Shown in pieces: positions 6,319-52,810 of a stretch of 64,000 bases of DNA. The stretch covers positions 62,001-126,000 of the IMG/VR virus record IMGVR_UViG_3300017917_000952. One strand, written 5' to 3'. Both the position numbers and the translations under genes were made by a program. The first letter of the stretch is position 1. Each line of letters starts with the position of its first letter. Under the pieces are notes generated by a model, which had not been told where the DNA came from, ran no database searches, and worked only from the letters and a program-made list of their open reading frames with translations.

Positions 6319-6687
6319 ATGCTACTTAACGAATTCTTCGGAAAAAATATAGACCCTATCAAGAATATGAACAAAGGTCGCGATGATAAAAACATCAGCG
6401 ACGACCTTTTTAACTATATTATTGATCACGATAAACTGCACAAAGATTATTTCTTCCCTATTGCTGCAAAAATTAGTAAGAAAAAGGGAGATGTAGACCG
6501 TAAAGAAATGTGCAAAGAATTCCTGCCTATGGTCTTAAAAGGCTGCAAAGAATATTACGAGCACAAAAAGATGAAGGGCAAATTAGGAACAGTGTTTTCT
6601 AAAGAATTGCGTAGCGATATGTGCGAGCGACTACTAGATCATTATAAAGATGATATTGTTAGAGGCAAATATAAGGTAGGTGCATAA
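6319..6687 (+). CDS. Hypothetical protein with MxxxEF leader
   Basis: ORF track 6298-6687; likely start MLLNEFFG at 6319. Confidence 0.7.
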   Translation: MLLNEFFGKNIDPIKNMNKGRDDKNISDDLFNYIIDHDKLHKDYFFPIAAKISKKKGDVDRKEMCKEFLPMVLKGCKEYYEHKKMKGKLGTVFSKELRSDMCERLLDHYKDDIVRGKYKVGA

Positions 6688-6688
6688 T

Positions 6689-9600: not shown

Positions 9601-10630
9601 CCACGGTCGTGATGGCAAGATTAGCCACAGCACCTACGGTTCAAGAGACAAAGGCGGTTCTACAGGACCTGATCGAACCGCTAAAGCAACTACGGCTGAC
9701 AAGATGATGAAACACGCTCATGACGTTATGATGAAGTCGATGAGCGATGCTGACAAGGTGAAAAAGGGATGGCGCAATCCTAACATGAAAGAGCAAGGTA
9801 TCGAAGAATACGGTGATACTGCCAAGGGTCAGAAGATGTTGACTAAAGTCCAGAAACGTGCTGTAGATAGAGTAGTATCTAAGAAAGCAGATACTGATCC
9901 AGCATACGCAAAAAAGAATAAAGCCACTGCTGACCGTGCTTGGGATAGAATGAAAGACAAGGATCTGGCAGAAGGCTGGAAAGAAAAAGTCGGAGCCGCC
10001 GCATTAGCAGGAGCAGTGGCTACAGGTGCCGGTGCTAATACTCCAAAGGTTCCACTCGACAAGGCAATTCAACAGGCAACTGCGGTATATAACATAAACA
10101 AGGCTGTTAAAAAACATAAAGAAAAAGAAGCCGAGAAGCGTAAGGCGGGCGAGAAAGAAGTTAAAGAGTCCGATAGTCCAGCAATGGCACAAACTGCTCG
10201 TCGCTTAACAGATCCTAAAGACGGTGCTGTTGCAAAACTACGTGCTGCTGGAGATAAGCGTAGAGAAGATCAATTAAAGAGTAGAGATATTGCCAAGAAG
10301 AACGAAGCAATGCTACCTAAGAGTGCTTTTTCTGGCAGCGACAAAAACAAATTAGGTTCAGCAGGACAATGGAAGAACACAGGCCCTAGTAAGAACCGCC
10401 CAGCAAGAGCAGGCGACCTAGTAGGTGGTGCTGAAGAAAGTATTGAGAAAGAAGAAAAGCAACGCCTAGATCCTAAGTGCTGGAAAGGCTATCGTAAAGC
10501 AGGCACTAAGATGAAGGGCGGTGTTCGAGTAAACAACTGCGTTCCAGTTAGCGAAGATGTTGAAAACATTTTTGCCGCTCTTATCGATAAGATTATCGTA
10601 AATGAAGCAATACAAAATAACAAGCGCTGA
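6689..10630 (+). CDS. Large multidomain protein: Pol-beta-type NTase + ligase-like adenylation domain + HxGH cytidylyltransferase-like domain + modular C-terminal tail
   Basis: SGSS...GDID...QID; KVDG...CEVL...EGIVI...IKV; GHKGH...MVGED...MSFTKLR; start MILREFF at 6689 after SD AAGGTAGG. Confidence 0.7.
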   Translation: MILREFFKRTLLEGGNLEIDGAQAQQIELKVHNRAYIVPILNTLLNAINDGFQQSQGGPLWSAKVLKSRKYLSGSSLHFFNTDIPDAEFERVKPKVGDIDTQINKDAEPQLAQWLNSVKGQVVGNATFLGYSRGNEQYSSLWELTDPPIKVQIDFEFVDYTEKDEPSDWAGFSHSSSWDDLSQGIKGVFHKFLIQAFTKLTTQEFLLRKMVGRGKARAEQDVPTTDNMFSFAVSSKEGGGLRPKYEPVTDEKGRPLVVDGLPVMRALPASGYEKDIGKIFQSVFGNKVNGAALKKVLPKTWSFTGLLDIMNMVLSPEEKEQVFDGFIDKLFAPGAQGLYKGDPQRDMTEKNAAVNYALKVLGITPPKNLEQMRQEYLKNYKVASEGAMGLDRPVTEADEPAVKAQLRKGMPHLRDLKPADFLDLVDELRSEGGRFKLQNIPLNVKVDGFGGRFGKDSQGRPFMGTSRTEPKYKAGFLDYHKEKGTTDPEILGRAANFDKLFEEMMNAIKIVDSKLGPDFLTDKQVTCEVLFLPFATQTEEGKLKFVGIEYDQLPQGVDLVLVPYRIVEASTGKDLPDEAAQQLANLGQHGSVMFMSNRLIQKDGLDVTEIINPLDNLEELKKIVSDTAGKRDRASLELRREVEAKLKPVQIALEKAIDEDPNIIGKDKLGQDYEGIVINSRLGPIKVTSQRQKDIIAQKNAAKAAARADAGRTNTNKTAVVAIGSFVGHKGHEELWDYTVKKAAELGGDPYLFMGNAVGKDDPIPVDVKLQTWHKMYPKYAKNISGTMAGGTLMQKIKHELINPLPGKPPRYDNIVIMVGEDQAGMNIAQALMKAVNKFPGYEHVKVSLEPTPRGTGMSFTKLRNVLKDPNATPEQQYALWSQGFDEAKLGKDWILHLMDITRKGMGITQKPTQPAAPVPVAETRLFNALVRPSLNEDHSTVGGWGKGAYDTYSGTRHGRGVAEMDKSQPSHGRDGKISHSTYGSRDKGGSTGPDRTAKATTADKMMKHAHDVMMKSMSDADKVKKGWRNPNMKEQGIEEYGDTAKGQKMLTKVQKRAVDRVVSKKADTDPAYAKKNKATADRAWDRMKDKDLAEGWKEKVGAAALAGAVATGAGANTPKVPLDKAIQQATAVYNINKAVKKHKEKEAEKRKAGEKEVKESDSPAMAQTARRLTDPKDGAVAKLRAAGDKRREDQLKSRDIAKKNEAMLPKSAFSGSDKNKLGSAGQWKNTGPSKNRPARAGDLVGGAEESIEKEEKQRLDPKCWKGYRKAGTKMKGGVRVNNCVPVSEDVENIFAALIDKIIVNEAIQNNKR

Positions 10631-14312: not shown

Positions 14313-16985
14313 ATGAGTTACGTTGATGCCATATGGGATCGCGAGAAAGACATCATTCATGCTGTCGAGCGAGATCTTAAAAAGGGTAGACTTTATCAAA
14401 CATTCCCAGCCCGCTATCTGTTTTACTATCCAGATGCTAAGGGCAAATATAAATCAATCCACGGCGAAAGCCTATCAAAAGTTACTGCAAAGAATTGGAA
14501 AGAGTTCATTAAAGAACAAAAGATCCATAGCGGTTACAAACTATACGAAAGCGACATCAACCCTGTATTTCGCTGTCTCGAAGAAAACTATCTAGGTAAG
14601 GAACCTCCAAAACTGAATGTAGCGTTTTGGGATATTGAGGTGGACTTCGATCCAGAGCGCGGCTATGCATCGCCCGATGATGCATTTATGCCAATCACTG
14701 CGATTGCCGTTCACCTACAATGGTTAGATACATTAGTCTGTCTTGCTATTCCTCCAAAGACTCTAACAATGGAGCAGGCACAAGAACAGGTTAAAGACTT
14801 TCCTAACACGTTTCTGTTCGAAACAGAATACGAAATGTTAGACACTTTTCTTAACCTAATTGAGGATGCCGACATTCTAAGCGGCTGGAACAGTGAAGGT
14901 TTCGATATGCCGTACACGGTAAATAGAATTATAAAGGTTCTAAGTAAAGAAGATACACGCAGACTGTGCCTTTGGAACCAAATGCCCAAGAAGCGGGAGT
15001 ACGAAAAATATGGAAAAGCGGCTGTTACTTATGACCTGGTTGGTCGTGTTCATTTGGACAGTCTCGAGCTGTACCGCAAATACACATATGAAGAGCGTCA
15101 CACCTACAGACTGGACGCAATTGGGGAAATGGAGATAGGTGAATCAAAGACTGTCTATGAAGGCACACTTGATCAACTATACAATAATGATTTCCGCAAG
15201 TTTATTGAATACAACAGGCAAGACTGTGCGCTGTTAAACAAACTTGATAAGAAATTAAAATTCATTGACCTTGCAAACACCATTGCACATGAAAACACTG
15301 TGTTGCTACAGACTACAATGGGCGCTGTTGCTGTTACGGAACAGGCTATTGTAAATGAAGCACATCACAGAGGACTAATCGTTCCAAGTCGTCCACGTAG
15401 AGATGATACAGTTAATAGTGCGGCTGCTGGTGCGTATGTTGCATATCCTAAAAAAGGACTTCACGACTGGATTGGCTCTATGGACATTAACAGTCTGTAT
15501 CCATCTGTCATTCGTGCATTGAACATGGGTCCAGAAACTATTGTCGGACAGTTAAGGCCAGATTATACTAAAGCAGAAATTGAAGAAAAAACAACTGCTA
15601 AGGGATTAAGTTTTGCCGGCTCATGGGAAGGCAAGTTCGGTAGTAACGAATATGAATTTGTTATGGCACAGGACAAAGCCCACGATATTATCATTGACTG
15701 GGAGAATGGTAGCACTGATGTAATGAGTGGTGCCGAAATTTATAAACTAATATTCGAAAGCGGCAAGCCTTGGATGATAAGTGCGAACGGCACAATCTTT
15801 ACACATGAGCACGAAGGAGTTATTCCCGGATTGCTAAAGCGTTGGTACGCTGAACGTAAAGAAATGCAGGCCAAACTTAAAGAGGCAATTAAGGCCGAAA
15901 ATAAAATCGAAGAAGAATATTGGGACAAGCGTCAGTTGGTTAAAAAGATTAACTTAAACAGTCTGTACGGCGCTATTCTTAATGTGGGCTGTAGATTCTT
16001 TGATGATAGAATCGGACAATCAACTACATTAACAGGACGACAAATTGCACGTCATATGGCTGCAAAAATTAATGAAGTTGTAACAGGCGAGTATGATCAC
16101 GTAGGTAAAGCAATTATCTACGGTGATACAGACTCTGCTTATTTCAGCGCCTATAGCAGTCTTAAAAATGAAATTGCAAAAGGACAAATCCCTTGGGACA
16201 AAGATACCGTTATACAACTATATGACACTGTAGCCAACGAAGTTAACAGCACATTCCCGCAGTTCATGCTCGATGCTTTCCACTGCCCAAAGAGCCGTGG
16301 CGAAGTTATCAAAGCAGGTCGAGAAATTGTTGCTATCAAGGGTCTGTTTATTACTAAGAAACGTTATGCAGTTCTTGTATATGACAAAGAAGGTAAGCGT
16401 AAAGATAAAGACGGCAAGCCGGGAGAAATCAAGGCTATGGGTCTAGATCTGAAGCGTAGCGACACACCTGAATTTATGCAGGAATTCCTAACTGAGATCC
16501 TAACAAAGGTCCTAAATGGCAGCGAAGAAAAAGAAATTCTAGATAGAATTGTCGAGTTCAGAACCGAATTTAAGGCTCGACCTGGTTGGGAGAAAGGTAG
16601 TCCAAAACGTGCAAACAATATTACAGACTACGAGGAAAAAGAAAAGAAAGCAGGCAAGGCAAATATGCCCGGTCATGTCCGAGCAAGTATTAATTGGAAT
16701 ACTCTCCGCAGAATGAACGGTGACAAATACAGTATGCAAATTGTCGACGGTATGAAGGTTATCGTCTGCAAGTTAAAGTCCAATCCTCTAGGATTTACCA
16801 GTGTTGCATATCCTGTAGATGAACTACGTTTACCTAAGTGGTTTATGGAACTGCCGTTTGATCACGGAGAAATGGAAGCCACCATTATTAACAACAAGGT
16901 TGAAAACCTTATTGGTGTACTGGAATGGGATTTGAACAGTACACAAGAAACAAACACATTTGGTAGTTTATTCAGTTTTGAATAA
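14313..16985 (+). CDS. gp43: Family B DNA polymerase (T4 gp43-like)
   Basis: Exo DIEVD, WNSEGFD, YNRQD; Pol DINSLYPS, KKINLNSLYG, YGDTDS, KKRYA. Confidence 0.96.
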   Translation: MSYVDAIWDREKDIIHAVERDLKKGRLYQTFPARYLFYYPDAKGKYKSIHGESLSKVTAKNWKEFIKEQKIHSGYKLYESDINPVFRCLEENYLGKEPPKLNVAFWDIEVDFDPERGYASPDDAFMPITAIAVHLQWLDTLVCLAIPPKTLTMEQAQEQVKDFPNTFLFETEYEMLDTFLNLIEDADILSGWNSEGFDMPYTVNRIIKVLSKEDTRRLCLWNQMPKKREYEKYGKAAVTYDLVGRVHLDSLELYRKYTYEERHTYRLDAIGEMEIGESKTVYEGTLDQLYNNDFRKFIEYNRQDCALLNKLDKKLKFIDLANTIAHENTVLLQTTMGAVAVTEQAIVNEAHHRGLIVPSRPRRDDTVNSAAAGAYVAYPKKGLHDWIGSMDINSLYPSVIRALNMGPETIVGQLRPDYTKAEIEEKTTAKGLSFAGSWEGKFGSNEYEFVMAQDKAHDIIIDWENGSTDVMSGAEIYKLIFESGKPWMISANGTIFTHEHEGVIPGLLKRWYAERKEMQAKLKEAIKAENKIEEEYWDKRQLVKKINLNSLYGAILNVGCRFFDDRIGQSTTLTGRQIARHMAAKINEVVTGEYDHVGKAIIYGDTDSAYFSAYSSLKNEIAKGQIPWDKDTVIQLYDTVANEVNSTFPQFMLDAFHCPKSRGEVIKAGREIVAIKGLFITKKRYAVLVYDKEGKRKDKDGKPGEIKAMGLDLKRSDTPEFMQEFLTEILTKVLNGSEEKEILDRIVEFRTEFKARPGWEKGSPKRANNITDYEEKEKKAGKANMPGHVRASINWNTLRRMNGDKYSMQIVDGMKVIVCKLKSNPLGFTSVAYPVDELRLPKWFMELPFDHGEMEATIINNKVENLIGVLEWDLNSTQETNTFGSLFSFE

Positions 16986-16993: not shown

Positions 16994-17022
16994 TTGACTT
17001 TTTACTACCGCCTAAATAAAAT
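16994..17022 (+). promoter_or_regulatory. sigma70-like promoter with overlapping CTAAATA late-type motif
   Basis: TTGACT-N17-TAAAAT; CTAAATA 17012-17018. Confidence 0.65.
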
Positions 17023-17041
17023 TAACAAAAGGATTATAATC

Positions 17042-17776
17042 ATGAAAGCAATCTTACAAGACATCGTCGCACATACAAACAAACTAGGGTTTTTAAATAT
17101 CGTTAAAGTAACAGGTACTAAAGATAAAACTCTAGTCGACAGTATGGCTGATGACCGTAGCGTTATTATGTACGCAGAAACAAAGGACCCACAGCCAAGT
17201 ATGCAGGGTGTGTTCGGTATGCCTCAACTCGAAAAACTTCGTTATCTTGTTGACGGTAAAGAATACCAAGACGATGCCAAGATCGAAGTTGTTACAGCAG
17301 ATCGAAACGGTGAGACTATTCCTGTAGGCTTACACTTTGAAAACAAAGACGGTGACTTCAAGAACGACTATCGTTTTATGAACACTGAGATTATTAACGA
17401 GAAACTTAAGACTGTTAAGTTCCGTGGTGTTAACTGGCATGTTGAAGTTGAACCTACGGTTAGTGCTATCCAGCGTTTCCAATTCCAAGCAGGTGCAAAT
17501 ACAGAACATACAACGTTCCTTGCAAAGACTGACGGAGATAAACTTGTGTTTGTTTTTGGTGATCAAAGCACTCACGGTGGCGAGTTTGTTTTTGCATCTG
17601 GCATTACTGGAAAGATCACAAAGGCATGGACATGGCCTGTTAACAGCGTTCTAAGTATTCTTAAGATCGCAGACGGTAACAATACTAAAATGAGTTTTAG
17701 TAACGACGGTGCTATGCAGATCGAATTAGACAGTGGCATTGCTACTTACAAATATATCATTCCTGCACAAGCATGA
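17042..17776 (+). CDS. Probable sliding clamp (gp45-like)
   Basis: 244 aa, alternating alpha/beta two-domain pattern, directly after polB; start MKAIL at 17042. Confidence 0.6.
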   Translation: MKAILQDIVAHTNKLGFLNIVKVTGTKDKTLVDSMADDRSVIMYAETKDPQPSMQGVFGMPQLEKLRYLVDGKEYQDDAKIEVVTADRNGETIPVGLHFENKDGDFKNDYRFMNTEIINEKLKTVKFRGVNWHVEVEPTVSAIQRFQFQAGANTEHTTFLAKTDGDKLVFVFGDQSTHGGEFVFASGITGKITKAWTWPVNSVLSILKIADGNNTKMSFSNDGAMQIELDSGIATYKYIIPAQA

Positions 17777-18126
17777 TCAATAACATATCAGGCATGAATA
17801 ATGTTGTCGTTATGAACGGCAACTCGTTCATGCCGTATGTAAACATGTCAAACCCTAGTGCTGGCATAGTCCGATACAATGGTAGTAACCAAAGTATGGA
17901 AGTGTATGACGGAAATAGTTGGTTGACTATGAATAATAATCATGTTAATATCGATCTGTCTGGTGCTGCTAATGCCGCCATTGCTTGGGCTATGAATAAG
18001 ATGGCAGAAGAAGCACAGTTAGAAAAGATGGCGGCAGAGCACCCTGCTGTAAAGGCAGCATATGAAAATATGAAACGTGCCGCAGAACAATTAAAAGCAA
18101 CAATAATATTGAGTAAAGATGAGTAA
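17773..18126 (+). CDS. Hypothetical protein
   Basis: 117-aa ORF with overlapping start/stop coupling. Confidence 0.65.
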   Translation: MINNISGMNNVVVMNGNSFMPYVNMSNPSAGIVRYNGSNQSMEVYDGNSWLTMNNNHVNIDLSGAANAAIAWAMNKMAEEAQLEKMAAEHPAVKAAYENMKRAAEQLKATIILSKDE

Positions 18127-19675
18127 CCCACCACGCAACCTAACACCGTTGCAGAAAGATTATGCTGTATATCTTCCTGCCATTAGTAGTTTCTACAGCA
18201 CCTATGTCGCAAAACAACGTCTAGAAGAATTTGTACCCAAGGATCGTATCCCTGCAGGATTTGATCGAGGAATTGAGGGTATGAACTTTCTTAACCCCGA
18301 ACAGGGCTACTTTACCTACAAGTATGCTCTATATTCTGCAGGTCACGCACAGTTAGATATTGTTAAGGCACAAACGCAAGAGTCAATGATCCAACAACGC
18401 GATAGAGGTAACTCTTTAATCTTAGGTGACTCCGGTGGGTATCAGATCGGTAAAGGCGTTCTTAAATTTGACTGGCTTAACTTTGAAGGCAAGGAAGCAA
18501 ACAAAACACGTCAACAGATTTTAGAATGGCTAGAAGCAACCGCCGATTGGTCAATGATGCTCGACGTTCCTACATGGGCCTGCGATCACATCCATAGTCC
18601 AAAGACTGGACTAAAAACATTTGACGATTGTCTAGACAAGACACGCTTCAATAACGATTACTTCCTTAAGAACCGCCTAGGTGCTACTAAGTGGCTTAAT
18701 GTTCTACAAGGCAGTGATTGGGATACTGCCGAAAAATGGTATAACGGTGTAAAAGAATTCAGCGATCCTAAAGGCAAGTATGCCGGTAAGGAAGCCGAAG
18801 GGTGGGCCTTCGGTGGTGCTAACATGTGTAAAATGGATATTACACTCAAGCGTCTAATGACCTTGCGTGAAGATGGTTTGCTGAAAGGCAAAAACTGGAT
18901 CCACTTCCTGGGTACAGCACAGTTAGATTGGTCGTGCTATCTAACGCAAATTCAACGTCAAATTAGGAAACACATCAATGAAGAAATTACCATATCTTTT
19001 GACTGCGCCTCACCGTTCATCGCAACAGCACACGGACTCGTCTACACAAACGCAGTCCACACGCCCAAAAGGTGGAGTGTTATTATGGACAAAGCCCCAG
19101 ATAACAAAGCACTTTCAGGAAGCGACATCCCGTTCCCATTCGAAAGCGAATTCGGTCGCAGGTTAACATTAGGTGATATCTGTTACTATGCTCCAGGTAT
19201 GCTTAACAAGATTGGCAAAGAAGGTAAAACTTCTTGGGATAGTTTTGCTTATGCACTTATGATGGGTCATAATGTCGAGTGTCATATTATTGCTGTACAA
19301 CGAGCACAGCAGTTAATGGACATTGAAGTTGCAAAGACCAAGGGTAAGATCAACTGGAAACACTGGAAGAAAGTAAAGTCCGGAGACATGAGTGACGAAT
19401 ACAGTGATTGGGTTCCTCGCAATATCCTATACTTCTCGAACTTTATCGAAGACCTGTTCAACACCAAAACAAAAGCAGAAGCATTTGAAATGATCGAGCA
19501 AGCAGGTCCTTTCTTACGCAGTCTAGAAGGTGCCCGACTGCAAGGTGGTCCTGCACAGAATACATTCGGTAACTTGTTTGAAATTGAAACGGTTACAGAT
19601 CAAAACGAAATCGATCTTGCTAACCCAGACGACGACGATCTAAGAGCGCTTGAAGAAGGTATTACAGGAGAATAA
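18119..19675 (+). CDS. dpdA: tRNA-guanine transglycosylase-fold protein, probable DNA 7-deazaguanine inserting enzyme (DpdA-like)
   Basis: TGT core motifs in order: GDSGGYQ, MLDVP, VLQG, AFGG, HFLG, SFDCASP, late HN; queE in same neighbourhood. Confidence 0.75.
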   Translation: MSNPPRNLTPLQKDYAVYLPAISSFYSTYVAKQRLEEFVPKDRIPAGFDRGIEGMNFLNPEQGYFTYKYALYSAGHAQLDIVKAQTQESMIQQRDRGNSLILGDSGGYQIGKGVLKFDWLNFEGKEANKTRQQILEWLEATADWSMMLDVPTWACDHIHSPKTGLKTFDDCLDKTRFNNDYFLKNRLGATKWLNVLQGSDWDTAEKWYNGVKEFSDPKGKYAGKEAEGWAFGGANMCKMDITLKRLMTLREDGLLKGKNWIHFLGTAQLDWSCYLTQIQRQIRKHINEEITISFDCASPFIATAHGLVYTNAVHTPKRWSVIMDKAPDNKALSGSDIPFPFESEFGRRLTLGDICYYAPGMLNKIGKEGKTSWDSFAYALMMGHNVECHIIAVQRAQQLMDIEVAKTKGKINWKHWKKVKSGDMSDEYSDWVPRNILYFSNFIEDLFNTKTKAEAFEMIEQAGPFLRSLEGARLQGGPAQNTFGNLFEIETVTDQNEIDLANPDDDDLRALEEGITGE

Positions 19676-20437: not shown

Positions 20438-20962
20438 ATGAAACGTGATTACACTGATGGTAATTTAGATGATGTAAACTTCTTCTTTGGAGAAGAAGTT
20501 GAACACACACCGGCATATGGTATGGACACTCTATTCGTAGTCGGCGTCCAACCAATTGAAACTATTGAACATTACCTATCAGGTACTACATACCAAACAA
20601 AGCATATTTTCTTCGGGGCCAATCATAGTTTTAATCCAAAAGATAATCTCGATTGGCAACGTTGGGAATCTATGATTCAGCACTTTTTAGATAAAGATTA
20701 TCTATGCAGTCTCGACATTCCGATGAGTGCTGTTGAAGAATTTCACGAAGGTGGCCTTTGTGAATCGGATAACTTTATTCCCCAAATTCGTGTTCCTATT
20801 CCGTACATTCGTCTCTGGAATTATAACACAATGATTAAAATCGACGACAAAGACTTCAAAGCCACTAATCCCGGTGTATGGAGTCATAGTCTGCATAAAT
20901 TAATGGACCGAGAGTGCTTTACTGACTGGTCTAAATATAAAAACGATAAGGTAATGAAATGA
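20438..20962 (+). CDS. Hypothetical protein in deazaguanine neighbourhood
   Basis: Start MKRDY at 20438; EVEHTPA.G..TLFV, HIFFGANHSF, alpha/beta pattern. Confidence 0.7.
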   Translation: MKRDYTDGNLDDVNFFFGEEVEHTPAYGMDTLFVVGVQPIETIEHYLSGTTYQTKHIFFGANHSFNPKDNLDWQRWESMIQHFLDKDYLCSLDIPMSAVEEFHEGGLCESDNFIPQIRVPIPYIRLWNYNTMIKIDDKDFKATNPGVWSHSLHKLMDRECFTDWSKYKNDKVMK

Positions 20963-21135
20963 TTAATTCAAAAATTGTCAAGGGTGTTCCTAAAGAAGAT
21001 GCCCAAGAAAAACTGTTTAAGTTGCTCGAAAGTATTGACTGGAAGTTGTGGGAAATGTATAATATGATGAAAGACAATCTTCCTGCAAAAAACGAAACTG
21101 CTTCTAAAACAAAAAAGAAGGCCGAAAATGAGTGA
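20959..21135 (+). CDS. Small hypothetical protein (58 aa, not in ORF track)
   Basis: Hand translation MINSKIVKGVPKEDAQEKLFKLLESIDWKLWEMYNMMKDNLPAKNETASKTKKKAENE*; fills the gap exactly and overlaps both neighbours. Confidence 0.6.
   Translation: MINSKIVKGVPKEDAQEKLFKLLESIDWKLWEMYNMMKDNLPAKNETASKTKKKAENE
21035..21063 (+). promoter_or_regulatory. sigma70-like promoter internal to small ORF
   Basis: TTGACT-N17-TATAAT. Confidence 0.55.
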
Positions 21136-21511
21136 ACGCAATATGATCTGGGTTACTTTTCGCAAGGAAGGTATTCACATGTACCCAGCGGCTGCAACAG
21201 ATCCTAATCTTAAAACAGGTGACGAATATGACGTTAGTTTCCTCGGTACTCCACATCGTCATATCTTCCATTTCAAAGTCTATATTCAAGTATTTCACGA
21301 TGATCGTGATATTGAGTTTATTCAGTTTAAGCGTTGGCTAGAGAAGTGCTATAGCGACGGCACACTCGAGCTCAACCACAAATCCTGCGAGATGATTGCA
21401 CGAGAACTTCATGCAACTATCAAGGCAAGATATCCAGGTCGTAAGATTTGGATTGACGTAAGTGAAGACGGCGAAAATGGCTGCTTCATTAAATTTCCAT
21501 CAACCCTTTAA
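21128..21511 (+). CDS. T-fold QueD-like protein with LxxxHRHxF motif (DpdL-like candidate)
   Basis: EGIH..., FLGTPHRHIFHF, DIEFI, SCEMIA, VSED; His-rich metal site typical of PTPS/QueD fold. Confidence 0.65.
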   Translation: MSERNMIWVTFRKEGIHMYPAAATDPNLKTGDEYDVSFLGTPHRHIFHFKVYIQVFHDDRDIEFIQFKRWLEKCYSDGTLELNHKSCEMIARELHATIKARYPGRKIWIDVSEDGENGCFIKFPSTL

Positions 21512-21525: not shown

Positions 21526-21777
21526 ATGTCGATTCCGGCATACATTCAAAAAACTCTCGTTATGAAGCCCGAAGTTACCAAGATCTTTGATGACCTCGAA
21601 AAATGGCACGATCACTGCCGCTTTGAATTGATCAACTTTGATCCTAAGGACCTGTACCGGTCCAAGGAATATAAGGATTGGTCTCGAGGCTTTGAAAAGA
21701 AGCCATGGAATGGCGAGCGTAAGCCATACCAAGGTAAGAATCCGAGATATTCGAATGGCGAACGTTTTTCTCGTTGA
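21526..21777 (+). CDS. Hypothetical protein
   Basis: 83-aa ORF with AGGA SD. Confidence 0.6.
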   Translation: MSIPAYIQKTLVMKPEVTKIFDDLEKWHDHCRFELINFDPKDLYRSKEYKDWSRGFEKKPWNGERKPYQGKNPRYSNGERFSR

Positions 21778-22819
21778 TCTAGAAAGCGTAGAAACAAGGT
21801 ACACGGGTCAATGGAAGGCCCATGTACCTTCCTTACTACGAAAGGCAGGACATAATGTTCAAGTTATTTCGGGACCTACTGATATTCCTGCATCAACTAC
21901 CCCAGGCGCTTTTCTTAACTTTGGCGGAACGAATATCTACAAAGCATCCCAAGTGGAGCAGATGGGTCGTTTATTCTGCGCCGGAACTGTCAGCCCTGGC
22001 GATCATTTTCTTTTTACTGATGCTTGGCATCCTGGTATCATTAATCTTCGATATATGAGCGAGCTTCTTAACATTCCTGTTAAGATTCACGCATTATGGC
22101 ATGCTGGTAGTTACGACCCCCAAGACTTCTTAGGACGTCTTATCGGAGATGCTCCGTGGGTTAGACACGCTGAGAAAAGTTTTTATCATGCGATTGACCA
22201 TAACTATTTTGCTACGCAGTTTCATATAAAACTATTCTGCGAAACTCTATTAGGTTTTACTCCTGCTGAAAAACTGTACGACACTAAAATTGTACGCACA
22301 GGCTGGCCAATGGAATATATGGTTGATACTCTTACTCCATATAAAGGTATGGACAAGAGAAATCTTATTTTGTTTCCGCATAGACTGGCTCCAGAGAAGC
22401 AGGTGGAAATTTTTAGAGATTTGAAAGAACACTTACCTCAATATGAATTTGTTATTTGTCAAGAACAAGAATTGACAAAGAATGAATATCATAATTTGCT
22501 AGGAGAAGCAAAGATGGTGTTTAGCGCCAACTTACAAGAGACACTTGGTATTAGTTGGTATGAAGGCGCTATCGTTGATGCTATTCCTATGATGCCAGAC
22601 AGACTAAGTTACAGTGAAATGGCCTATGCTACATTTAAGTATCCTAGTGAATGGACTGAGTCATACACAGCGTACACAGAGCACCGTCAAGAGTTATGTG
22701 CTAAAATAATTCAATACATGGACAATTACGAAAAGTTCTTGCCTACGTTGAGAAAACAGACACAAGACTTAACAACAAACTTTTTTAGTGCAAATGGTTT
22801 ACTGGAGAACATTAAATGA
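21755..22819 (+). CDS. GT-B (family 4/Glycos_transf_1-like) glycosyltransferase
   Basis: Start MANVF at 21755; FPHRLAPEK and E-x7-E motif ETLGISWYE; PDRLSYSEM. Confidence 0.8.
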   Translation: MANVFLVDLESVETRYTGQWKAHVPSLLRKAGHNVQVISGPTDIPASTTPGAFLNFGGTNIYKASQVEQMGRLFCAGTVSPGDHFLFTDAWHPGIINLRYMSELLNIPVKIHALWHAGSYDPQDFLGRLIGDAPWVRHAEKSFYHAIDHNYFATQFHIKLFCETLLGFTPAEKLYDTKIVRTGWPMEYMVDTLTPYKGMDKRNLILFPHRLAPEKQVEIFRDLKEHLPQYEFVICQEQELTKNEYHNLLGEAKMVFSANLQETLGISWYEGAIVDAIPMMPDRLSYSEMAYATFKYPSEWTESYTAYTEHRQELCAKIIQYMDNYEKFLPTLRKQTQDLTTNFFSANGLLENIK

Positions 22820-23280
22820 AATGGTTTCTTAAAATTCTAGAACGACTAGGTCGTAAACGTATTGTAATGGACAGGATTAACAATGAGCCTTATCTCGAAC
22901 GCTACTACCTCTTTCTTAAAGATAGAAAGCATTTCCCCTTCAATGTGTTTCTTCACCGTTTCCTTAAATCAGATCCCGATGATGTGCATGATCATCCATG
23001 GGGTTACGCAACGCTTATCTTAAAAGGCGGCTACTATGAATGGGTGGGCAAGTTTAACTCCAACGGCGAAAAGATTGGTGAAGTTAGAATGTGGCGTGGC
23101 CCTGGCCATTTCCGTGTATGTAGTGCTACTTCTTACCATCGTATTGAACTTGACCCAGGGGTAGACTGCTGGACTTTGTTCATGCCCGGTCCTCAGAAGA
23201 GAGAATGGGGATTCTGGTATAAGGGTGCTTGGATGCACAATGACCAATACCTTAAAGGTCGGTCAGAGGGAACTTTGTAA
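22816..23280 (+). CDS. Cupin-fold protein
   Basis: HDHPW...GGYYE...YHRIEL...WTLFMPG metal-binding cupin pattern. Confidence 0.7.
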   Translation: MKWFLKILERLGRKRIVMDRINNEPYLERYYLFLKDRKHFPFNVFLHRFLKSDPDDVHDHPWGYATLILKGGYYEWVGKFNSNGEKIGEVRMWRGPGHFRVCSATSYHRIELDPGVDCWTLFMPGPQKREWGFWYKGAWMHNDQYLKGRSEGTL

Positions 23281-24296: not shown

Positions 24297-24325
24297 TTGA
24301 CAGGTCTAAATACACTCTGTATAAT
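24297..24325 (+). promoter_or_regulatory. Consensus sigma70-like promoter
   Basis: TTGACA-N17-TATAAT. Confidence 0.8.
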
Positions 24326-24350
24326 GTACTTATCTTATCAAGGCTATAAA

Positions 24351-24638
24351 ATGCAGGCTAACCCAAATAGATACCAAGAAGCATTAGACATTCTGCAGGA
24401 AGAATGCGGAGAAGTAATTGTAGAAGTTAGCAAGTGTCGCAGGTTTGGTCTAAATACAACACATTACAAAACAGGCCTAGAGCATAACAAAATGCTCGAA
24501 ATTGAAATAGGTGATGTGTTAGCAATGATTGATATCTTAGAAGAACAGGGTATCATAGACCACACTGCGTTAATGCACGCCAAGTCAAAGAAAAAAGAAA
24601 AACTTAAACAATGGTCAAAAATATATGAGCAAAATTAA
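24351..24638 (+). CDS. MazG-like all-alpha NTP pyrophosphohydrolase
   Basis: LQEECGEV...EIEIGDVLAMI (EExxE...ExxD); start at 24351. Confidence 0.7.
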   Translation: MQANPNRYQEALDILQEECGEVIVEVSKCRRFGLNTTHYKTGLEHNKMLEIEIGDVLAMIDILEEQGIIDHTALMHAKSKKKEKLKQWSKIYEQN

Positions 24639-25479
24639 AGTCGCAGAATTATTCTATTCTATTCAAGGCGAAGGACGCTATATGGGTGTTCCTTCTGTCT
24701 TTCTTCGCACCTTTGGGTGTAATTTTAAATGCCAAGGGTTTGGCATGCCACGAGGAGAACTAAGCAATGAGGCAGAAAATATTGACGCTACTAAGTACAC
24801 CGAGTACAAATCGCTTCCTTTGGTTTCTACAGGTTGTGACAGTTACGCTAGTTGGGATCCTCGCTTTAAGCATCTATCCCCTCTTCTGGATACTTCTGCG
24901 ATTGCCGACGCTATTGTGGATACGTTACCGCACAAGGAATGGCGGGACGAACATCTCGTAATTACAGGTGGTGAGCCTTTGCTAGGTTGGCAGAAGCAGT
25001 ATCCTGATTTACTCGATCATCCTAAGATGCGTAGTTTGAGAGAAATTACATTTGAGACAAACGGTACAATGCGCCTAACGCCTGCATTCACAGAATATCT
25101 AAAAAACTGGCAATGGAGTCACGAAAAGAACCTTACAAGAGAAATTACATTTAGTGTCAGTGCTAAACTTCCTGTAAGTGGCGAACCGTGGAAGGATGCT
25201 ATCAAACCGGCCGTGGTTAAATCTTATCAAGACATTGGTGCCAACGTCTATCTTAAGTTTGTGATTACCAACGAAGAAGATTTAAAGGACGCTGAACGAG
25301 CAGTCGAAGAATTTAGGGCAGGTGGGTTTACTGGACACGTATACCTTATGCCTGTTGGCGGTGTAGAGTCTGTGTATGCACTAAACAATAGGAACGTAGC
25401 AGACATTGCCATGCGTAAAGGTTGGAGATATTCAGATCGACTTCAAGTGCCACTGTTTAAAAACGAGTGGGGCACCTAA
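24625..25479 (+). CDS. queE: 7-carboxy-7-deazaguanine synthase (radical SAM)
   Basis: ELFYSIQGEG...GVPSVFLRTFGCNFKC...CDS, ITGGEP, ETNGT, SVSAK, LKFV, RLQV. Confidence 0.85.
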   Translation: MSKIKVAELFYSIQGEGRYMGVPSVFLRTFGCNFKCQGFGMPRGELSNEAENIDATKYTEYKSLPLVSTGCDSYASWDPRFKHLSPLLDTSAIADAIVDTLPHKEWRDEHLVITGGEPLLGWQKQYPDLLDHPKMRSLREITFETNGTMRLTPAFTEYLKNWQWSHEKNLTREITFSVSAKLPVSGEPWKDAIKPAVVKSYQDIGANVYLKFVITNEEDLKDAERAVEEFRAGGFTGHVYLMPVGGVESVYALNNRNVADIAMRKGWRYSDRLQVPLFKNEWGT

Positions 25480-25694: not shown

Positions 25695-26124
25695 GAAAAT
25701 TTTCGGTATTGATAAAATAAAGGCACAGACCGAAGCAAGTATTAAGGCAGCAGAAGAAGCCAAACGTATTGCAGAAGAAGCCACTGCGGCTGCTGAACGT
25801 GCTAAAGAAGCAGAACGTTTGGCAAAATTAAGTCCAAAAGAATTGGCTACAGAAAAGAAAGAGCCGTGGATCGCTGTTTTGGAAACTCATGTAAACAAAG
25901 AAAATGTTCGTAATGGTTTTTTCGAACTTGACTGGAATGAGTATTTTGTGTTACAATTACGTAGTGCTGGATATACTGGCGCTACAGATGAAGAAATTGT
26001 TGATCAATGGTTCAATGAACTTTGTCGTAACGTTGGTGCCGACGAGGGCATTGATATGAGCCGACGCGGCGCAGGCTATGTAAATCGCGCCCTACGTGAT
26101 GATGGACGAACTGAGGTCAGTTAA
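25678..26124 (+). CDS. Hypothetical protein
   Basis: Start MKKIV at 25678; coiled coil then EPWIAV...FFELDWN. Confidence 0.65.
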   Translation: MKKIVEKIFGIDKIKAQTEASIKAAEEAKRIAEEATAAAERAKEAERLAKLSPKELATEKKEPWIAVLETHVNKENVRNGFFELDWNEYFVLQLRSAGYTGATDEEIVDQWFNELCRNVGADEGIDMSRRGAGYVNRALRDDGRTEVS

Positions 26125-27116
26125 TGAACAAAACTTATATTCTGGTAGATACCGCTAATACTTTTTTCCGTGCTCGACACGTTATCCGTGGTTCACTAGA
26201 AGATAAAGTTGGTATGAGCATTCATACCACTTTGGGCAGTATTCGCAAGGCATGGCGTGACTTTAACGGCGATCACATTGTATTCTGCCTCGAAGGTCGC
26301 AGTTGGCGCAAGGATCATTACGCTCCGTACAAGCGCAACCGCTCCGACGCTCGGGCCGCGCTCAGCCCTCGCGAGGCTGAAGAAGATCGTGTGTTTTGGG
26401 AAACATTCGATCAGTTTAAAGACTTCATAATCAATAAGACAAACTGCACAGTTCTGCATCATCAACAACTAGAAGCAGACGACCTTATTGCAGGGTTTAT
26501 TCAAAGTCATCCTAATGATAATCATGTCATCATTAGTACAGATGGAGACTTTGCACAACTGATTGCACCCAATGTCAAACAGTACAACGGTGTAATGGAA
26601 GTCACAACTACTCACGAAGGATACTTTGATGCCAAAGGTAAACCTGTTGTTGATAAGAAAACTGGTGAAGCAAAAGGCGCACCGGACCCAAAATGGCTAC
26701 TCTTTGAGAAGTGTATGCGTGGCGACACCTCCGACAACATCTTTAGTGCATATCCGGGAGTACGTGAGAAAGGCACAAAGAATAAGGTTGGTCTCCGTGA
26801 AGCGTTTGCAGATCGCGATAGTAAAGGTTGGGCGTGGAACAATCTGATGCTTCAGCGTTGGATGGATCACGAAGGTGTCGAACATCGTGTGCTTGACGAT
26901 TATAACCGTAATGTTACTCTTTGTGACCTGACTGCACAACCCGAAGAGATTAAATACATTATTAAAGAAACAATTGAAAAAGCAACAACAGCAGAAAAGA
27001 ATATTCCGCAAGTTGGAATCAGACTTATGAAATTCTGCGCGGAATACGATCTGCAGAAAATTAGCGAACAGGTACAGAGCTATGCAGAACCACTCAATGC
27101 AAGGTACACGGCATAA
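26124..27116 (+). CDS. rnh: T4 RNase H / 5'-3' exonuclease (FEN1 fold)
   Basis: LVDTAN, EADDLIA, ISTDGDFAQL, GDTSDNI. Confidence 0.88.
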   Translation: MNKTYILVDTANTFFRARHVIRGSLEDKVGMSIHTTLGSIRKAWRDFNGDHIVFCLEGRSWRKDHYAPYKRNRSDARAALSPREAEEDRVFWETFDQFKDFIINKTNCTVLHHQQLEADDLIAGFIQSHPNDNHVIISTDGDFAQLIAPNVKQYNGVMEVTTTHEGYFDAKGKPVVDKKTGEAKGAPDPKWLLFEKCMRGDTSDNIFSAYPGVREKGTKNKVGLREAFADRDSKGWAWNNLMLQRWMDHEGVEHRVLDDYNRNVTLCDLTAQPEEIKYIIKETIEKATTAEKNIPQVGIRLMKFCAEYDLQKISEQVQSYAEPLNARYTA

Positions 27117-32297: not shown

Positions 32298-32770
32298 TCA
32301 ACTGTATTGTTGCAGTAGAAAAGAACCAGGGCATTGGATTTGAAGGTCAGATGCCCTGGCCTCACCTTAAAGGTGATATGTCTTGGTTCAAAAGGATGAC
32401 GACTGGACAGGTTGTTATAATGGGTGCAACAACTTTTGATAGTTTAGGGAAACCCCTACCTAACAGAATAAATGTAGTCATTAGTAGAAAACGCCTATTA
32501 GGGGATCATACATTTGATGATTGTGGTGCGGCATTAGATTATTGTTCTGTAGAATATCCTGATAAAGAAATTTTTATTATCGGCGGAAGTGCCATTTATC
32601 AACATTACTTACATATTGTTGATAGATTTTACGTAACCGAAATAGATGCAGATTTTAAATGCGATAAATTCTTTGATCTAGATTACGTTCGAGAAAACTT
32701 TACAAAAGTTACAGAACATGCTAAATTTACAGACCCGATACCCTATGTAATAAAGGAATATAATATATGA
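32294..32770 (+). CDS. folA: Dihydrofolate reductase
   Basis: GIG..GQMPWPHLKGD..WFK, IMGATT, PLPNRINVVIS, IIGGS. Confidence 0.93.
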   Translation: MINCIVAVEKNQGIGFEGQMPWPHLKGDMSWFKRMTTGQVVIMGATTFDSLGKPLPNRINVVISRKRLLGDHTFDDCGAALDYCSVEYPDKEIFIIGGSAIYQHYLHIVDRFYVTEIDADFKCDKFFDLDYVRENFTKVTEHAKFTDPIPYVIKEYNI

Positions 32771-33651
32771 CACACCCAGATAGAGTTTACCTAGATGCTC
32801 TACAAAATATTTTAGACAACGGCGAAGACCGGCCAGACAGAACAGGAGTAGGGACTAAAGGAATCTTTGGTATGCAAATGCGATTCAATTTGCAAGACGG
32901 GTTCCCTGCTCTTACAACTAAAAAATTAGCATGGAAGGCTGTGGTCAGTGAACTGCTTTGGTTTATTGAAGGCAGCGGTGACGAACGTAGACTAGCAGAA
33001 ATTTTACACGGCTCAAGGACTACTGATAAGACAACCATATGGACTGCGAATGCCAGTGCTGACTATTGGGCAAACAAAAGGTTGCGTAGACATCCTGCAG
33101 ACCTCGGTAGAGTATACGGTGTACAATGGAGGCGTTGGCGTAAACCTTTAATTCGAATTAACAAAGTTGTTCTACAAAATCACGATCAGTTAATGGAATT
33201 AATCAGCGGTATCAAAGCAGATCCATATAGCCGTAGACATATTATTACTGCATGGAATCCCGGAGAACTAGAGCTCATGGCCTTGCCTCCTTGCCATATG
33301 ATGGCACAGTTCTATGTTAATAATGGAAAGTTAAGTTGCCAGATGTATCAGCGTAGTGCCGATATGTTCTTAGGAGTACCATTTAATATTGCATCGTATG
33401 CCTTGTTTACACATATGATTGCACAGGTCTGTGATCTAGATGTGGGCGAATTAATTATCACTATTGGTGATGCTCACATTTACCAAAATCACTTTGATCA
33501 AGTACGTGAGCAATTAGGAAGGGAGCCATTACAGTTGCCTACACTTAAACTAAATCCCTCTATTAAGGACATTACAAAGTTCACAATGGAAGATATCGAG
33601 CTAGTCGGTTATACAAGCCACGATGCAATTAAAGCACCGATGGCTGTTTAA
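32767..33651 (+). CDS. thyA: Thymidylate synthase
   Basis: DRTGVGT, ELLWF, YGVQWR, SRRHI, MALPPCH, YQRSADMFLGVPFNIASY, GDAHIY. Confidence 0.97.
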   Translation: MTHPDRVYLDALQNILDNGEDRPDRTGVGTKGIFGMQMRFNLQDGFPALTTKKLAWKAVVSELLWFIEGSGDERRLAEILHGSRTTDKTTIWTANASADYWANKRLRRHPADLGRVYGVQWRRWRKPLIRINKVVLQNHDQLMELISGIKADPYSRRHIITAWNPGELELMALPPCHMMAQFYVNNGKLSCQMYQRSADMFLGVPFNIASYALFTHMIAQVCDLDVGELIITIGDAHIYQNHFDQVREQLGREPLQLPTLKLNPSIKDITKFTMEDIELVGYTSHDAIKAPMAV

Positions 33652-52793: not shown

Positions 52794-52810
52794 AATTTCT
52801 TTCTATATCG

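Follow-up and report, generated by a model that had tools for sequence, protein, structure and literature searches.

A predicted glycosyltransferase related to the tRNA-queuosine mannosyltransferase and linked to phage genes for 7-deazaguanine in DNA

A jumbo-phage gene was found to encode a predicted sugar-transferring enzyme with specific profile kinship to QTMAN (GTDC1), the enzyme that mannosylates queuosine in tRNA. The gene and its relatives, down to 26 to 30% identity, are kept beside DpdA-like, DpdL or QueE genes, which serve the insertion of 7-deazaguanine into DNA. The most likely role, inferred from this linkage and held as somewhat more probable than not, is glycosylation of a 7-deazaguanine base in, or destined for, DNA. 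No published description of this was found, and literature searches for a glycosylated deazaguanine in DNA, or for DUF3524 in phages, returned nothing.

Sequence and gene features

The window analyzed comprised 64,000 nucleotides (positions 62,001 to 126,000 of IMG/VR record IMGVR_UViG_3300017917_000952). Features were assigned from a six-frame ORF listing, profile scans and a promoter consensus scan, and were as follows.

18119..19675 (+), TGT-superfamily, DpdA-like candidate DNA-guanine transglycosylase, 518 aa.
20438..20962 (+), conserved protein of unknown function, 174 aa (p174).
21035..21063 (+), sigma-70-like promoter match (11 of 12, consensus scan only) upstream of DpdL, the small ORF, the glycosyltransferase and the cupin.
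21128..21511 (+), DpdL, a QueD paralogue proposed as 7-carboxy-7-deazaguanine decarboxylase, 127 aa.
21526..21777 (+), conserved small ORF of unknown function, 83 aa (p83), overlapping the glycosyltransferase start.
21755..22819 (+), QTMAN-like GT-B (GT4-clan) predicted glycosyltransferase (GT), 354 aa.
22816..23280 (+), cupin-fold protein, 154 aa, its start overlapping the GT stop codon.
24297..24325 (+), perfect sigma-70-like promoter match (12 of 12, consensus scan only) upstream of MazG and QueE.
24324..24638 (+), MazG-like nucleotide pyrophosphohydrolase.
24625..25479 (+), QueE-like radical-SAM 7-carboxy-7-deazaguanine synthase.

The ATG at 21755 gives a 354-aa protein, and this start is supported by homologues that align from residues 1-4 onwards. 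A sequence-only reading had noted FPHRLAPEK and a second motif, likened both to the GTDC1/DUF3524 family, and described the gene as embedded among deazaguanine genes. That observation was confirmed. FPHRLAPEK lies at residues 207-215 and QETLGISWYEGAIVDAIPMMPDRLSYSEM at residues 261-289, and these are the most conserved parts of a large family. H209, R210, K215, E262, E270, L284, S285, Y286 and E288 were invariant or nearly so in 60 sequences of 29 to 53% identity; E270, R210 and K215 were conserved in all 60 and E262 in 98%. The family motifs comprise HRxxxEK (residues 209-215), E-x7-E (E262/E270) and PDRLSYxE (residues 281-288). Roles in catalysis and diphosphate binding are assigned to these residues by analogy with GT4 enzymes.

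Profile comparisons and phylogeny

The further inference of the sequence-only reading, that a QTMAN relative may glycosylate a deazaguanine derivative in DNA, was supported only in part. The model search that had been named beforehand as a check on it showed that the protein is not a DUF3524 member by the family's own model. Pfam PF12038 (QTMAN_N; 25-bit cut-off) gave no hit at E<=10 on the query, none on 60 relatives at E<=0.01 and none in three genomes that carry homologues, although it scores E 1e-44 to 1e-66 on true members. Scans of the protein against Pfam, PHROGs and NCBIfam gave only sub-threshold noise. The query scored 12 bits against the Pfam Glycos_transf_1 cut-off of 26.4 bits, and 38 of 60 relatives hit this model at E<=0.01 (best 1.3e-8). 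A phmmer search of solved structures found nothing, and the family profile found only a GT4 C-domain, that of the glucoside glucosyltransferase 8xsg.

Kinship was examined by profile comparison with eight Bacteroidota proteins that carry Pfam QTMAN_N. These are bacterial proteins of untested function, and human QTMAN was not included. The hhalign comparison gave 98.6% probability and E 7.7e-16 over 267 columns, against a best E of 4e-7 for GT4 controls. The family HMM scored 58 to 73 bits on QTMAN_N proteins and 7.4 bits or less on 18 ordinary GT4 proteins from the same genomes, and the reciprocal search agreed. The motif resemblance is thus real, specific and more than chance, and QTMAN was the best profile match of the families tested. 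In the alignment, FPHRxAPEKQP pairs with NHRWEYDKNP, the second motif region pairs with QDFFG...EA...C.PLLPNRLAYPE, and within it PDRLSYxE pairs with PNRLAYPE. The shared C-domain motifs that ordinary GT4 enzymes lack are HRxxxxK(N/Q)P, acidic-x7-E and P(D/N)RL(S/A)YxE.

Nearly all of this signal lies in the C-terminal, donor-binding domain (E 2.7e-14, against 4.2e-6 for GT4 controls), where both motifs sit. The N-terminal acceptor domain, which defines DUF3524, matched only weakly and without significance (E 0.005, probability 7%, 136 columns in register). QTMAN_N proteins ranked first for this domain but reached only 4 to 10 bits, with shared LEP...QW and D..FF.(T/S).(F/Y)H patterns. The resemblance therefore says little about the acceptor. 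In a tree, the family formed a separate clade (98/99) beside, and not inside, the QTMAN_N clade (100/99); the two were joined with moderate support (81/72) and set apart from the 18 GT4 controls, which are a small sample.

Structure prediction and comparison

An AlphaFold2 model of the protein (pLDDT 95.6, pTM 0.92) showed a two-Rossmann GT-B fold. Foldseek (probability 1.00) and VIA-align placed generic GT4 enzymes first, with Z 22 to 26 over about 300 residues to BshA, MshA, sucrose-phosphate synthase and GlgM, and with glycogen synthases also among the leading matches. GTDC1 was not in the Swiss-Prot top 30, and in the Atlas QTMAN_N clusters reached TM 0.74 to 0.76 against 0.82 for the best ordinary GT4 cluster. 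Searches of the PDB, Swiss-Prot, AFDB clusters and BFVD could not discriminate within GT4, and structure was therefore dropped as a test of kinship in favor of the profile comparisons.

These matches also bear on a soluble acceptor. BshA and MshA are GT4 enzymes with small-molecule acceptors (malate or inositol phosphate, in thiol cofactor synthesis), and two tetrahydrobiopterin glucosyltransferases appeared among the matches. The protein is acidic (pI 5.9, family median 5.7), with an aromatic and acidic conserved N-domain containing few conserved basic residues, which is unusual for a DNA-binding enzyme. FolE and two PTPS-family genes are in the module. The GT may therefore glycosylate a soluble pterin or deazapurine intermediate to give a small-molecule glycoside that never enters DNA, parallels being cyanobacterial tetrahydrobiopterin glucoside and huimycin. 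This is considered unlikely. The one partner kept in nearly every lineage is the DpdA/TGT-like transglycosylase, which is there even where no biosynthesis genes are present, and the gene sits in the phage replication module next to the polymerase, clamp and flap nuclease. The secondary-metabolite deazapurine clusters characterized so far lack nucleic-acid insertion enzymes.

Modification of another DNA base, such as a hydroxymethyl-pyrimidine in the manner of the T4 alpha- and beta-glucosyltransferases, with coincidental placement in the deazaguanine module, was also considered. Phage DNA glucosyltransferases are GT-B enzymes, and a likely shared biological role is sugar decoration of a modified DNA base as a counter-defence. 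A thymidylate-synthase-family gene is present in the window at 32767-33651. However, that gene scores as an ordinary ThyA (356 bits) and lies 10 kb away, and the bacterial islands and ACP17 keep the GT plus a DpdA-like gene, with or without DpdL, and have no such gene beside them. No T4 glucosyltransferase appeared among the 50 listed solved-structure matches, and a cyanophage DNA alpha-GT ranked 48th in BFVD at TM 0.54. The T4-type enzymes also act on a different base (hmC or hmU) and have a different gene context. This reading is very unlikely.

Gene neighborhoods

The gene context is the strongest evidence, and the deazaguanine context is conserved across unrelated phages and bacterial islands. 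In 80 metagenomic phage loci from IMG/VR the gene order is DpdA-like, p174, DpdL, p83, GT, with QueE further on. DpdL was adjacent to the GT in 75 of 80, p83 was present in 77 of 80 (35 to 90% identity, always directly upstream of the GT), p174 in 72 and the cupin in 66, and QueE was downstream of the GT in 56. In ACP17 the order is QueD, FolE, p174 homologue, DpdA-like, GT, DpdL, QueE. In PA5oct a DpdA-like gene is directly upstream of the GT. In X1 (X1/BUDD) and BCSR5, where the GT is 26 to 27% identical, it abuts the DpdA-like gene and QueE. Relatives at 30 to 31% identity still sit next to DpdL, FolE or a DpdA-like gene. In Phosso, by contrast, the DpdA-like gene lies about 170 kb from the GT. 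All 17 GenBank phage records with a full-length GT are among only 28 DpdL-positive records out of 50,697. Some DpdL-positive phages lack the GT, namely phiST, whose DNA carries plain dDG, RHph_I1_18 and Ahp1; the GT is therefore not needed for insertion.

A locus search with a 10-sequence alignment found mobile islands in alphaproteobacterial chromosomes that carry GT, DpdL, DpdA-like and QueD genes with a nuclease and an integrase. Others carry a DpdA-like gene, a YhhQ-type (Vut_1) transporter and the GT. The DpdA-like gene is adjacent in the bacterial islands. In sister branches, genes of sugar chemistry were found nearby. A PIG-L-type de-N-acetylase lies two genes upstream of the GT in BCSR5, with a homologue at that position in X1, and GlmS plus a BshB-like deacetylase flank the distant GT in PhiXhv-15, which also encodes a DpdA-like protein. 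Such pairing recalls BshA/BshB and MshA/MshB, which are pairs of a GT4 GlcNAc transferase and a PIG-L deacetylase, although no PIG-L gene was found next to the GT in this window's lineage.

The same neighborhoods argue against two further readings. The first is that the enzyme, like QTMAN, glycosylates queuosine or a precursor at position 34 of host tRNAs and so retunes translation during infection. The sister relationship to QTMAN_N proteins, and their similarly acidic pI, favor it. Against it, the acceptor domain is not significantly QTMAN-like, and linkage is to DpdL and a DpdA-like enzyme of the type found in phages with modified DNA, and in bacteria to a nuclease in integrase-bearing islands. 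The 206-kb record has no tRNA genes, the module has no queuine cyclopentenediol to act as acceptor, and the Bacteroidota QTMAN_N genes show no DpdA or DpdL neighbors, so the two families have different contexts. This reading is improbable. The second is that of an ordinary cell-envelope or capsule enzyme, as some source annotations state ("glycosyltransferase involved in cell wall biosynthesis") and as the generic GT4 fold would allow, or of a catalytically silent partner of the transglycosylase. No membrane or polyprenol-linked pathway genes are nearby, the linkage to deazaguanine genes is strict across lineages, and the conserved catalytic motifs argue against a silent scaffold. Both forms are very unlikely.

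Proposed role

On the favored view the gene encodes a GT-B glycosyltransferase, predicted to be active and probably retaining, that is an accessory enzyme of the phage's 7-deazaguanine DNA-modification module. FolE, QueD and QueE would make 7-carboxy-7-deazaguanine from GTP, DpdL is proposed to convert it to 7-deazaguanine, and the TGT/DpdA-like enzyme would exchange guanine in phage DNA for the deazapurine. The GT would transfer a sugar from a nucleotide-sugar onto the deazaguanine-derived base, either on DNA after insertion or on the free base just before it, giving a glycosylated 7-deazaguanine that shields DNA from host nucleases. The analysis itself establishes the predicted fold, the conserved donor-site motifs, the specific kinship of the donor domain to the QTMAN family and the gene linkage in many unrelated genomes; that a sugar is transferred at all, that the acceptor is the deazaguanine base and that the product ends up in DNA are inferences. 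7-Deazaguanine and its carboxy form have no hydroxyl, the usual acceptor of GT4 enzymes, so either unusual chemistry (ester, N- or C-glycoside) or an unidentified hydroxylation step would be needed. Candidate acceptor atoms are the C7 substituent, such as the carboxyl of dCDG or a hydroxyl added by another enzyme, and the exocyclic N2 amine.

QTMAN is the only enzyme family known to glycosylate a 7-deazaguanine nucleoside in a nucleic acid. HuiG, a GT4 enzyme with a canonical Glyco_transf_4 N-domain, is described as glycosylating a 7-deazapurine intermediate with UDP-GlcNAc; it acts on a free base in secondary metabolism, in clusters without insertion enzymes. In huimycin the sugar is carried on the exocyclic 2-amino group, an acceptor atom that exists whatever the C7 substituent is. 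The known phage and bacterial Dpd systems (DpdA1-4, DpdL, DpdM, DpdN; Cui et al. 2023, PMC10516641) share with this module the biosynthetic core, DpdL, a TGT-like transglycosylase and a MazG neighbor. None of the eight 7-deazaguanine derivatives reported in that paper carries a sugar, and no glycosyltransferase is mentioned.

PA5oct DNA resists several enzymes with G in their sites, by a modification that has not been identified, which is only indirect evidence for a modified guanine. ACP17 dpdL plus dpdA gave no dDG in E. coli, and the authors of that work suggested that other enzymes may be needed. The proposed role offers explanations for both observations, for the second since in ACP17 the GT gene lies between those two genes. 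PA5oct and ACP17 are cultured phages.

A broader reading is possible but rather less likely than not. In this view, phages of several unrelated lineages (PA5oct-like jumbo phages, ACP17, X1/BUDD, BCSR5, Phosso) and the alphaproteobacterial islands carry a sugar-bearing 7-deazaguanine in their DNA, written by a previously unrecognized sister family of the tRNA queuosine mannosyltransferase working with a DpdA-like transglycosylase. In the islands the mark would serve as the "self" label of a restriction-modification-like defense system paired with a CoiA-type nuclease. As far as is known, the glycosylated DNA bases described to date are pyrimidine derivatives (glucosyl- and arabinosyl-hmC, glycosylated hmU and base J), and this would be the first glycosylated purine reported in DNA. 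Such a base would be a new class of DNA hypermodification, with consequences for restriction, CRISPR, glycosylase-based and modification-sensing defenses and for sequencing such genomes, and would show that tRNA queuosine glycosylation has a sister family working on DNA.

Other genes of the module

The Pfam TGT model found no transglycosylase in this genome, PA5oct or Phosso, which suggested a route without DpdA. That idea was rejected because the protein at 18119-19675 was recognized as divergent but TGT-like, an assignment that rests on motif and profile only. It carries the catalytic-site motif DSGGYQ; DSGG(F/Y/L)Q is invariant in 8 homologues, and the proteins are of 420 to 540 aa. The profile hit solved tRNA-guanine transglycosylases at E 2.8e-4 with the motif in register, and its Atlas neighbors are TGT and DpdA clusters. 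It is 41% identical to the PA5oct gene directly upstream of the GT. It was left unassigned to a subfamily and is not clearly the phiST-type DpdA3, since phiST CGPG_00065 scores only 7.4 bits and lacks the DSGG motif.

DpdL carries the signature L-x3-HRH-x-F (LGTPHRHIF), hit phrog_17812, and by tblastn matched phiST CGPG_00067, the gene named DpdL by Cui et al. 2023, and the ACP17 gene next to the GT. The DpdL profile had no sequence-level hit in the PDB. MazG was identified with Pfam (E 2e-4), and phiST has a MazG next to its DpdL. QueE hit phrog_2076 (QueE-like, E 5e-54) and Pfam Radical_SAM and Fer4_12. FolE (E 1.2e-38) and QueD (E 2.3e-16) lie in the same genome outside the window. No clear QueC was found, only two PP-loop ATPases with weak N-terminal hits.

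The cupin-fold protein hit phrog_4786 (E 1.9e-38, annotated as cysteine dioxygenase-like), and its Atlas neighbors are cupin and CDO clusters at TM about 0.6. It is possibly a metal-dependent oxygenase and is specific to this lineage, being absent from the ACP17, X1, BCSR5 and bacterial loci. The small ORF p83 gave no family hit. The p174 protein, whose ACP17 homologue lies between FolE and the DpdA-like gene, was modeled at pLDDT 83.5 and gave no significant solved-structure match; its only named shape neighbors are QueE clusters (TM 0.59), a weak lead only.

Open reading frame

The six-frame listing shows an open frame ending at 22819, in which the ATG at 21755 gives a protein of 354 residues. 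Homologues align from residues 1-4, so this start is the likely one. The frame overlaps the end of a conserved 83-aa ORF (21526-21777), and a weak GAGA lies about 10 nt upstream of the ATG. A sequence-only reading had likened two stretches of this protein to motifs of the GTDC1/QTMAN (DUF3524) family; both are present, at residues 207-215 and 261-289, and that observation held. The window lies at bases 62001-126000 of a 206,751-bp IMG/VR phage fragment, estimated to be 58% complete, with no tRNA genes in the 206-kb record. Very large ORFs of 3,953, 1,316 and about 1,140 aa, typical of jumbo phages, are found at 37491-49352 (-), 6680-10630 (+) and 49356-58973 (-).

Family and fold prediction

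Library scans of the protein were almost uninformative. Pfam gave Glycos_transf_1 at E 0.15 and no QTMAN_N hit, and PHROGs and NCBIfam gave only noise. The family itself is very large. At least 8,000 clusters at 90% identity were found, many of them 75-88% identical and on contigs of up to 384 kb, and there were 1,133 representatives at 50% identity with E<=0.001. Sixty full-length members of 29-53% identity were aligned (alignment A1). E270, R210 and K215 are conserved in all sixty sequences and E262 in 98%. E262 and E270 form an E-x7-E motif, R210 and K215 lie in an F-P-H-R-x-A-P-E-K-Q-P block, and a P-D-R-L-S-Y-x-E block is also conserved. Of the 60 members, 38 hit Pfam Glycos_transf_1 and none hit PF12038.

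With this alignment, AlphaFold2 gave a model with pLDDT 95.6 and pTM 0.92 and a predicted two-Rossmann GT-B architecture. Foldseek and VIA-align placed the model among retaining GT4/GT5 enzymes (BshA, MshA, sucrose-phosphate synthase, GlgM and glycogen synthase), with Z of 22-26 and sequence identity of 9-16%. No T4 DNA glucosyltransferase was among the listed matches, and a cyanophage DNA alpha-GT ranked 48th among viral models.

Profile comparison with QTMAN_N proteins

Structure searches could not decide whether the protein is QTMAN-like. Two Atlas clusters that carry QTMAN_N appeared among the ten nearest family sets (TM 0.76 and 0.74), but ordinary GT4 clusters reached 0.76-0.82, and GTDC1 was not in the Swiss-Prot top 30. 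Sequences were therefore collected for a profile test. PF12038 hit 40 of 151 sampled Bacteroidota genomes, with E values of 1e-44 to 1e-66; these genomes encode one to three QTMAN_N proteins each and gave the QTMAN_N set. Canonical GT4 proteins (PF13439) from five genomes, four of the QTMAN_N-bearing Bacteroidota genomes plus the Magnetospirillum genome, served as controls. The comparison was thus with bacterial QTMAN_N proteins rather than with human QTMAN, and against a small GT4 control set.

hhalign of A1 against eight QTMAN_N proteins gave a probability of 98.6% and E 7.7e-16 over 267 columns spanning both domains. Against the 18 pooled controls the best result was E 4.4e-7, and against the control subgroups E was 5.6e-4 or worse. 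The A1 HMM scored QTMAN_N proteins at 58-73 bits and controls at 7.4 bits or less. The reciprocal HMM scored A1 members at up to 38 bits, the window protein at 16.9 bits and controls at 14 bits or less. Among the ORFs of twelve 19.5-kb Bacteroidota regions, the A1 HMM picked out only the 11 QTMAN_N genes. In the Bacteroidota loci (L154-L165) the QTMAN_N genes have conserved neighbours of their own, and no DpdA or DpdL lies nearby.

Motifs paired in the hhalign alignment (this family, then QTMAN_N proteins)
LEP...QW, paired with LLEPFFSGSHKQW
D..FAT.FH, paired with AD..FFNS.YH
FPHRxAPEKQP, paired with NHRWEYDKNP
QETLGI...E, paired with QDFFG...EA
PDRLSYxE, paired with PNRLAYPE

The motif resemblance proposed in the sequence-only reading was therefore right, with two qualifications. 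When the profile was split, the signal was carried by the C-terminal donor domain (E 2.7e-14, against 4.2e-6 for controls); the N-terminal domain, which is what PF12038 models and which normally binds the acceptor, gave only E 0.005. In addition, a maximum-likelihood tree placed the family (98/99) beside the QTMAN_N clade (100/99) and not inside it, the join having moderate support (81/72) against a small control sample. The protein is accordingly assigned to a sister family with a QTMAN-type donor domain, and not to DUF3524.

Gene neighbourhood

Features around the glycosyltransferase (GT) gene in the window
14313-16985, family-B DNA polymerase
16994-17776, conserved protein matching the gene annotated as sliding clamp in Phosso and as structural protein in PA5oct
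18119-19675, TGT/DpdA-like protein, 518 aa
20438-20962 (+), p174, conserved 174-aa protein
21128-21511, DpdL, 127 aa
21526-21777, p83
21755-22819, the GT
22816-23280 (+), cupin-fold protein, its start overlapping the GT stop codon
23252-24289 (-), convergent radical-SAM gene
24324-24638, MazG
24625-25479, QueE
26124-27116, flap nuclease

The 518-aa protein has no Pfam hit but carries DSGGYQ, which aligns with DSGG(F/L)Q in the genes beside the GT in PA5oct, ACP17, X1, BCSR5, Magnetospirillum and Pelagibacterium. An 8-sequence profile of it hit solved tRNA-guanine transglycosylases at E 2.8e-4 with the motif in register, and its Atlas neighbours are TGT and DpdA clusters. On this motif and these modest profile scores it is a TGT-superfamily, DpdA-like protein. 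It barely matches the phiST DpdA3 type protein (7.4 bits, no DSGG motif), and no subfamily was therefore assigned.

The 127-aa protein carries LGTPHRHIF, the L-x3-HRH-x-F signature given for DpdL by Cui et al. 2023, and matches phiST CGPG_00067, the DpdL type gene, and the ACP17 gene. FolE and QueD lie elsewhere in the genome. No clear QueC was found in a search for it. Two tandem 290-aa PP-loop ATPases with weak Asn_synthase and QueC N-terminal hits lie at genome positions 60581-62330 (-), that is, from upstream of the window to window position 330, and may be carboxylate-activating enzymes for CDG. Promoter-like matches precede DpdL (11 of 12) and MazG (12 of 12).

p174 lies inside the module and is also present in ACP17. 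It has a good model but no solved-structure match; its only named shape neighbours are QueE clusters (TM 0.59), and it has no Cys-x3-Cys-x2-Cys motif. The cupin-fold protein belongs to a viral family weakly like cysteine dioxygenase, some members of which are fused to a NUDIX domain. The radical-SAM protein, convergent on the GT operon, has a proline-rich, charged linker and is present only in the five closest relatives.

Linkage in other genomes

The main evidence is the linkage elsewhere. In 80 IMG/VR loci at 73-84% identity, the order is polymerase, clamp-like gene, DpdA-like, p174, DpdL, p83, GT, then QueE further on, wherever the contig reaches. DpdL, p83 and the GT are contiguous, and the stretch after the GT varies. 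These 80 loci belong to one lineage and count as one observation; independent support comes from about five phage lineages and several bacterial island types. Contigs of this phage lineage carrying the polymerase, the clamp-like gene and the whole module (L093-L100, from the genome-contig set) are binned into MAGs labelled Crocinitomicaceae, Erysipelotrichaceae, Fischerella, Neomarinimicrobiota (a 335-kb contig), Methanobacteriota, Legionellales and Pacearchaeota; these are probably binning errors and not evidence of hosts.

GenBank phages from different lineages showed the following orders. In the PA5oct group it is DpdA-like, GT, DpdL, then QueE further on. In Phosso it is DpdL, GT, then FolE and QueE further on, and the DpdA-like gene lies about 170 kb away. 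In ACP17, a T4-like phage, it is QueD, FolE, p174 homologue, DpdA-like, GT, DpdL, QueE. In X1/BUDD and BCSR5, whose GTs are only 26-27% identical, it is PP-loop protein (PAPS-reductase-like), PIG-L-type deacetylase, unknown gene, GT, DpdA-like, small ORF, QueE. The PIG-L/LmbE domain, of a de-N-acetylase type, was detected only in the BCSR5 protein (locus L009, 6797-7504), two genes upstream of the GT; the X1 protein at the same position (locus L008, 6876-7523) is its homologue (28-30% identity, no Pfam hit of its own).

All 17 GenBank records with a full-length GT are among only 28 DpdL-positive records out of 50,697. Representatives at 30-31% identity still sit next to DpdL, FolE or a DpdA-like gene.

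In bacterial chromosomes, Magnetospirillum and a Sulfotelmatobacter MAG carry the GT, DpdL, a DpdA-like gene and QueD. The island of Magnetospirillum aberrantis (locus L110, 2250-15500) holds, in order, HEPN_LA2681, a two-component pair, a CoiA_nuc-like 519-aa nuclease, the GT, DpdL, a DpdA-like gene, QueD and an integrase, with a similar arrangement in locus L109. It looks like a Dpd-style restriction-modification or defence island that includes the glycosyltransferase. Pelagibacterium, Devosia, Azospirillum and a Roseobacter carry a DpdA-like gene, a Vut_1 transporter and the GT as a three-gene unit (Pelagibacterium locus L102, 6092-9038; also loci L103, L104 and L117). No FolE, QueD, QueE or DpdL lies next to the unit, and a resolvase or integrase lies nearby. 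Vut_1 is the family of YhhQ, the preQ0/preQ1 transporter, and the arrangement suggests a salvage-based version of the system. L117, from the Roseobacter, has two GT paralogues. The partner kept in nearly every lineage is therefore the DpdA-like putative transglycosylase.

The GT is not needed for insertion as such. phiST, whose DNA carries plain dDG, has DpdL but no GT, as do RHph_I1_18 and Ahp1. The distant PhiXhv-type GT is flanked by GlmS and a BshB-like deacetylase (PhiXhv-15, locus L010, 5669-7797), and that phage also encodes a DpdA-like protein.

Proposed mechanism

The donor site looks intact, so sugar transfer from a nucleotide-sugar is the natural activity, and the linkage points to a deazaguanine-derived acceptor. 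The donor-domain kinship and the gene linkage are results of the comparisons described here, whereas the transfer itself, its acceptor and its donor are inferred from sequence and gene context alone. The sequence-only reading as a whole is partly supported; its suggestion that a QTMAN relative embedded among deazaguanine genes may glycosylate a deazaguanine derivative in DNA remains an inference from gene linkage.

The acceptor atom is the weak point, because DG and CDG have no hydroxyl. Three options are not excluded by the data. The first is the C7 substituent, through an ester on the dCDG carboxyl or a hydroxyl added by another enzyme; the cupin whose start overlaps the GT stop codon is a candidate for that step and could supply a hydroxyl, but it is limited to this phage lineage. 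The second is the exocyclic N2 amine. HuiG, a GT4 enzyme, is described as glycosylating a 7-deazapurine intermediate with UDP-GlcNAc. In huimycin the sugar sits on the 2-amino group. N2 is present whatever the C7 group is, which fits the islands that lack DpdL. The third is C-glycosylation, which is not known to have a precedent in GT4 enzymes.

The deacetylases in the BCSR5 and PhiXhv branches suggest a HexNAc donor there, followed by de-N-acetylation, and hint that those branches add GlcNAc and then deacetylate it to glucosamine; this does not extend to the donor used in the present window. The QTMAN-type donor domain might point to a GDP-sugar, but this is speculation. The protein is acidic (pI 5.9), and its conserved N-domain residues are mostly aromatic and acidic, which is compatible with action either on the free base or on a flipped-out base in DNA.

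Relation to published work

PA5oct DNA resists enzymes with G in their restriction sites, and the phage is sensed by modification-dependent END nucleases; the authors of that work inferred a modified G from QueE and PTPS homologues but did not identify it. Iyer et al. noted a deazaguanine system in PA5oct. Literature searches for a glycosylated deazaguanine in DNA, or for DUF3524/QTMAN in phages, found nothing in the library searched. Cui et al. could not obtain dDG from ACP17 dpdL plus dpdA in E. coli and suggested that other enzymes may be needed; the GT gene lies between those two genes. A further distant GT relative (30% identity; locus L151, 5382-7958) lies in a phage whose family-A DNA polymerase is fused to a uracil-DNA glycosylase domain, a polymerase type that a 2026 paper links to phages with T-modified genomes.
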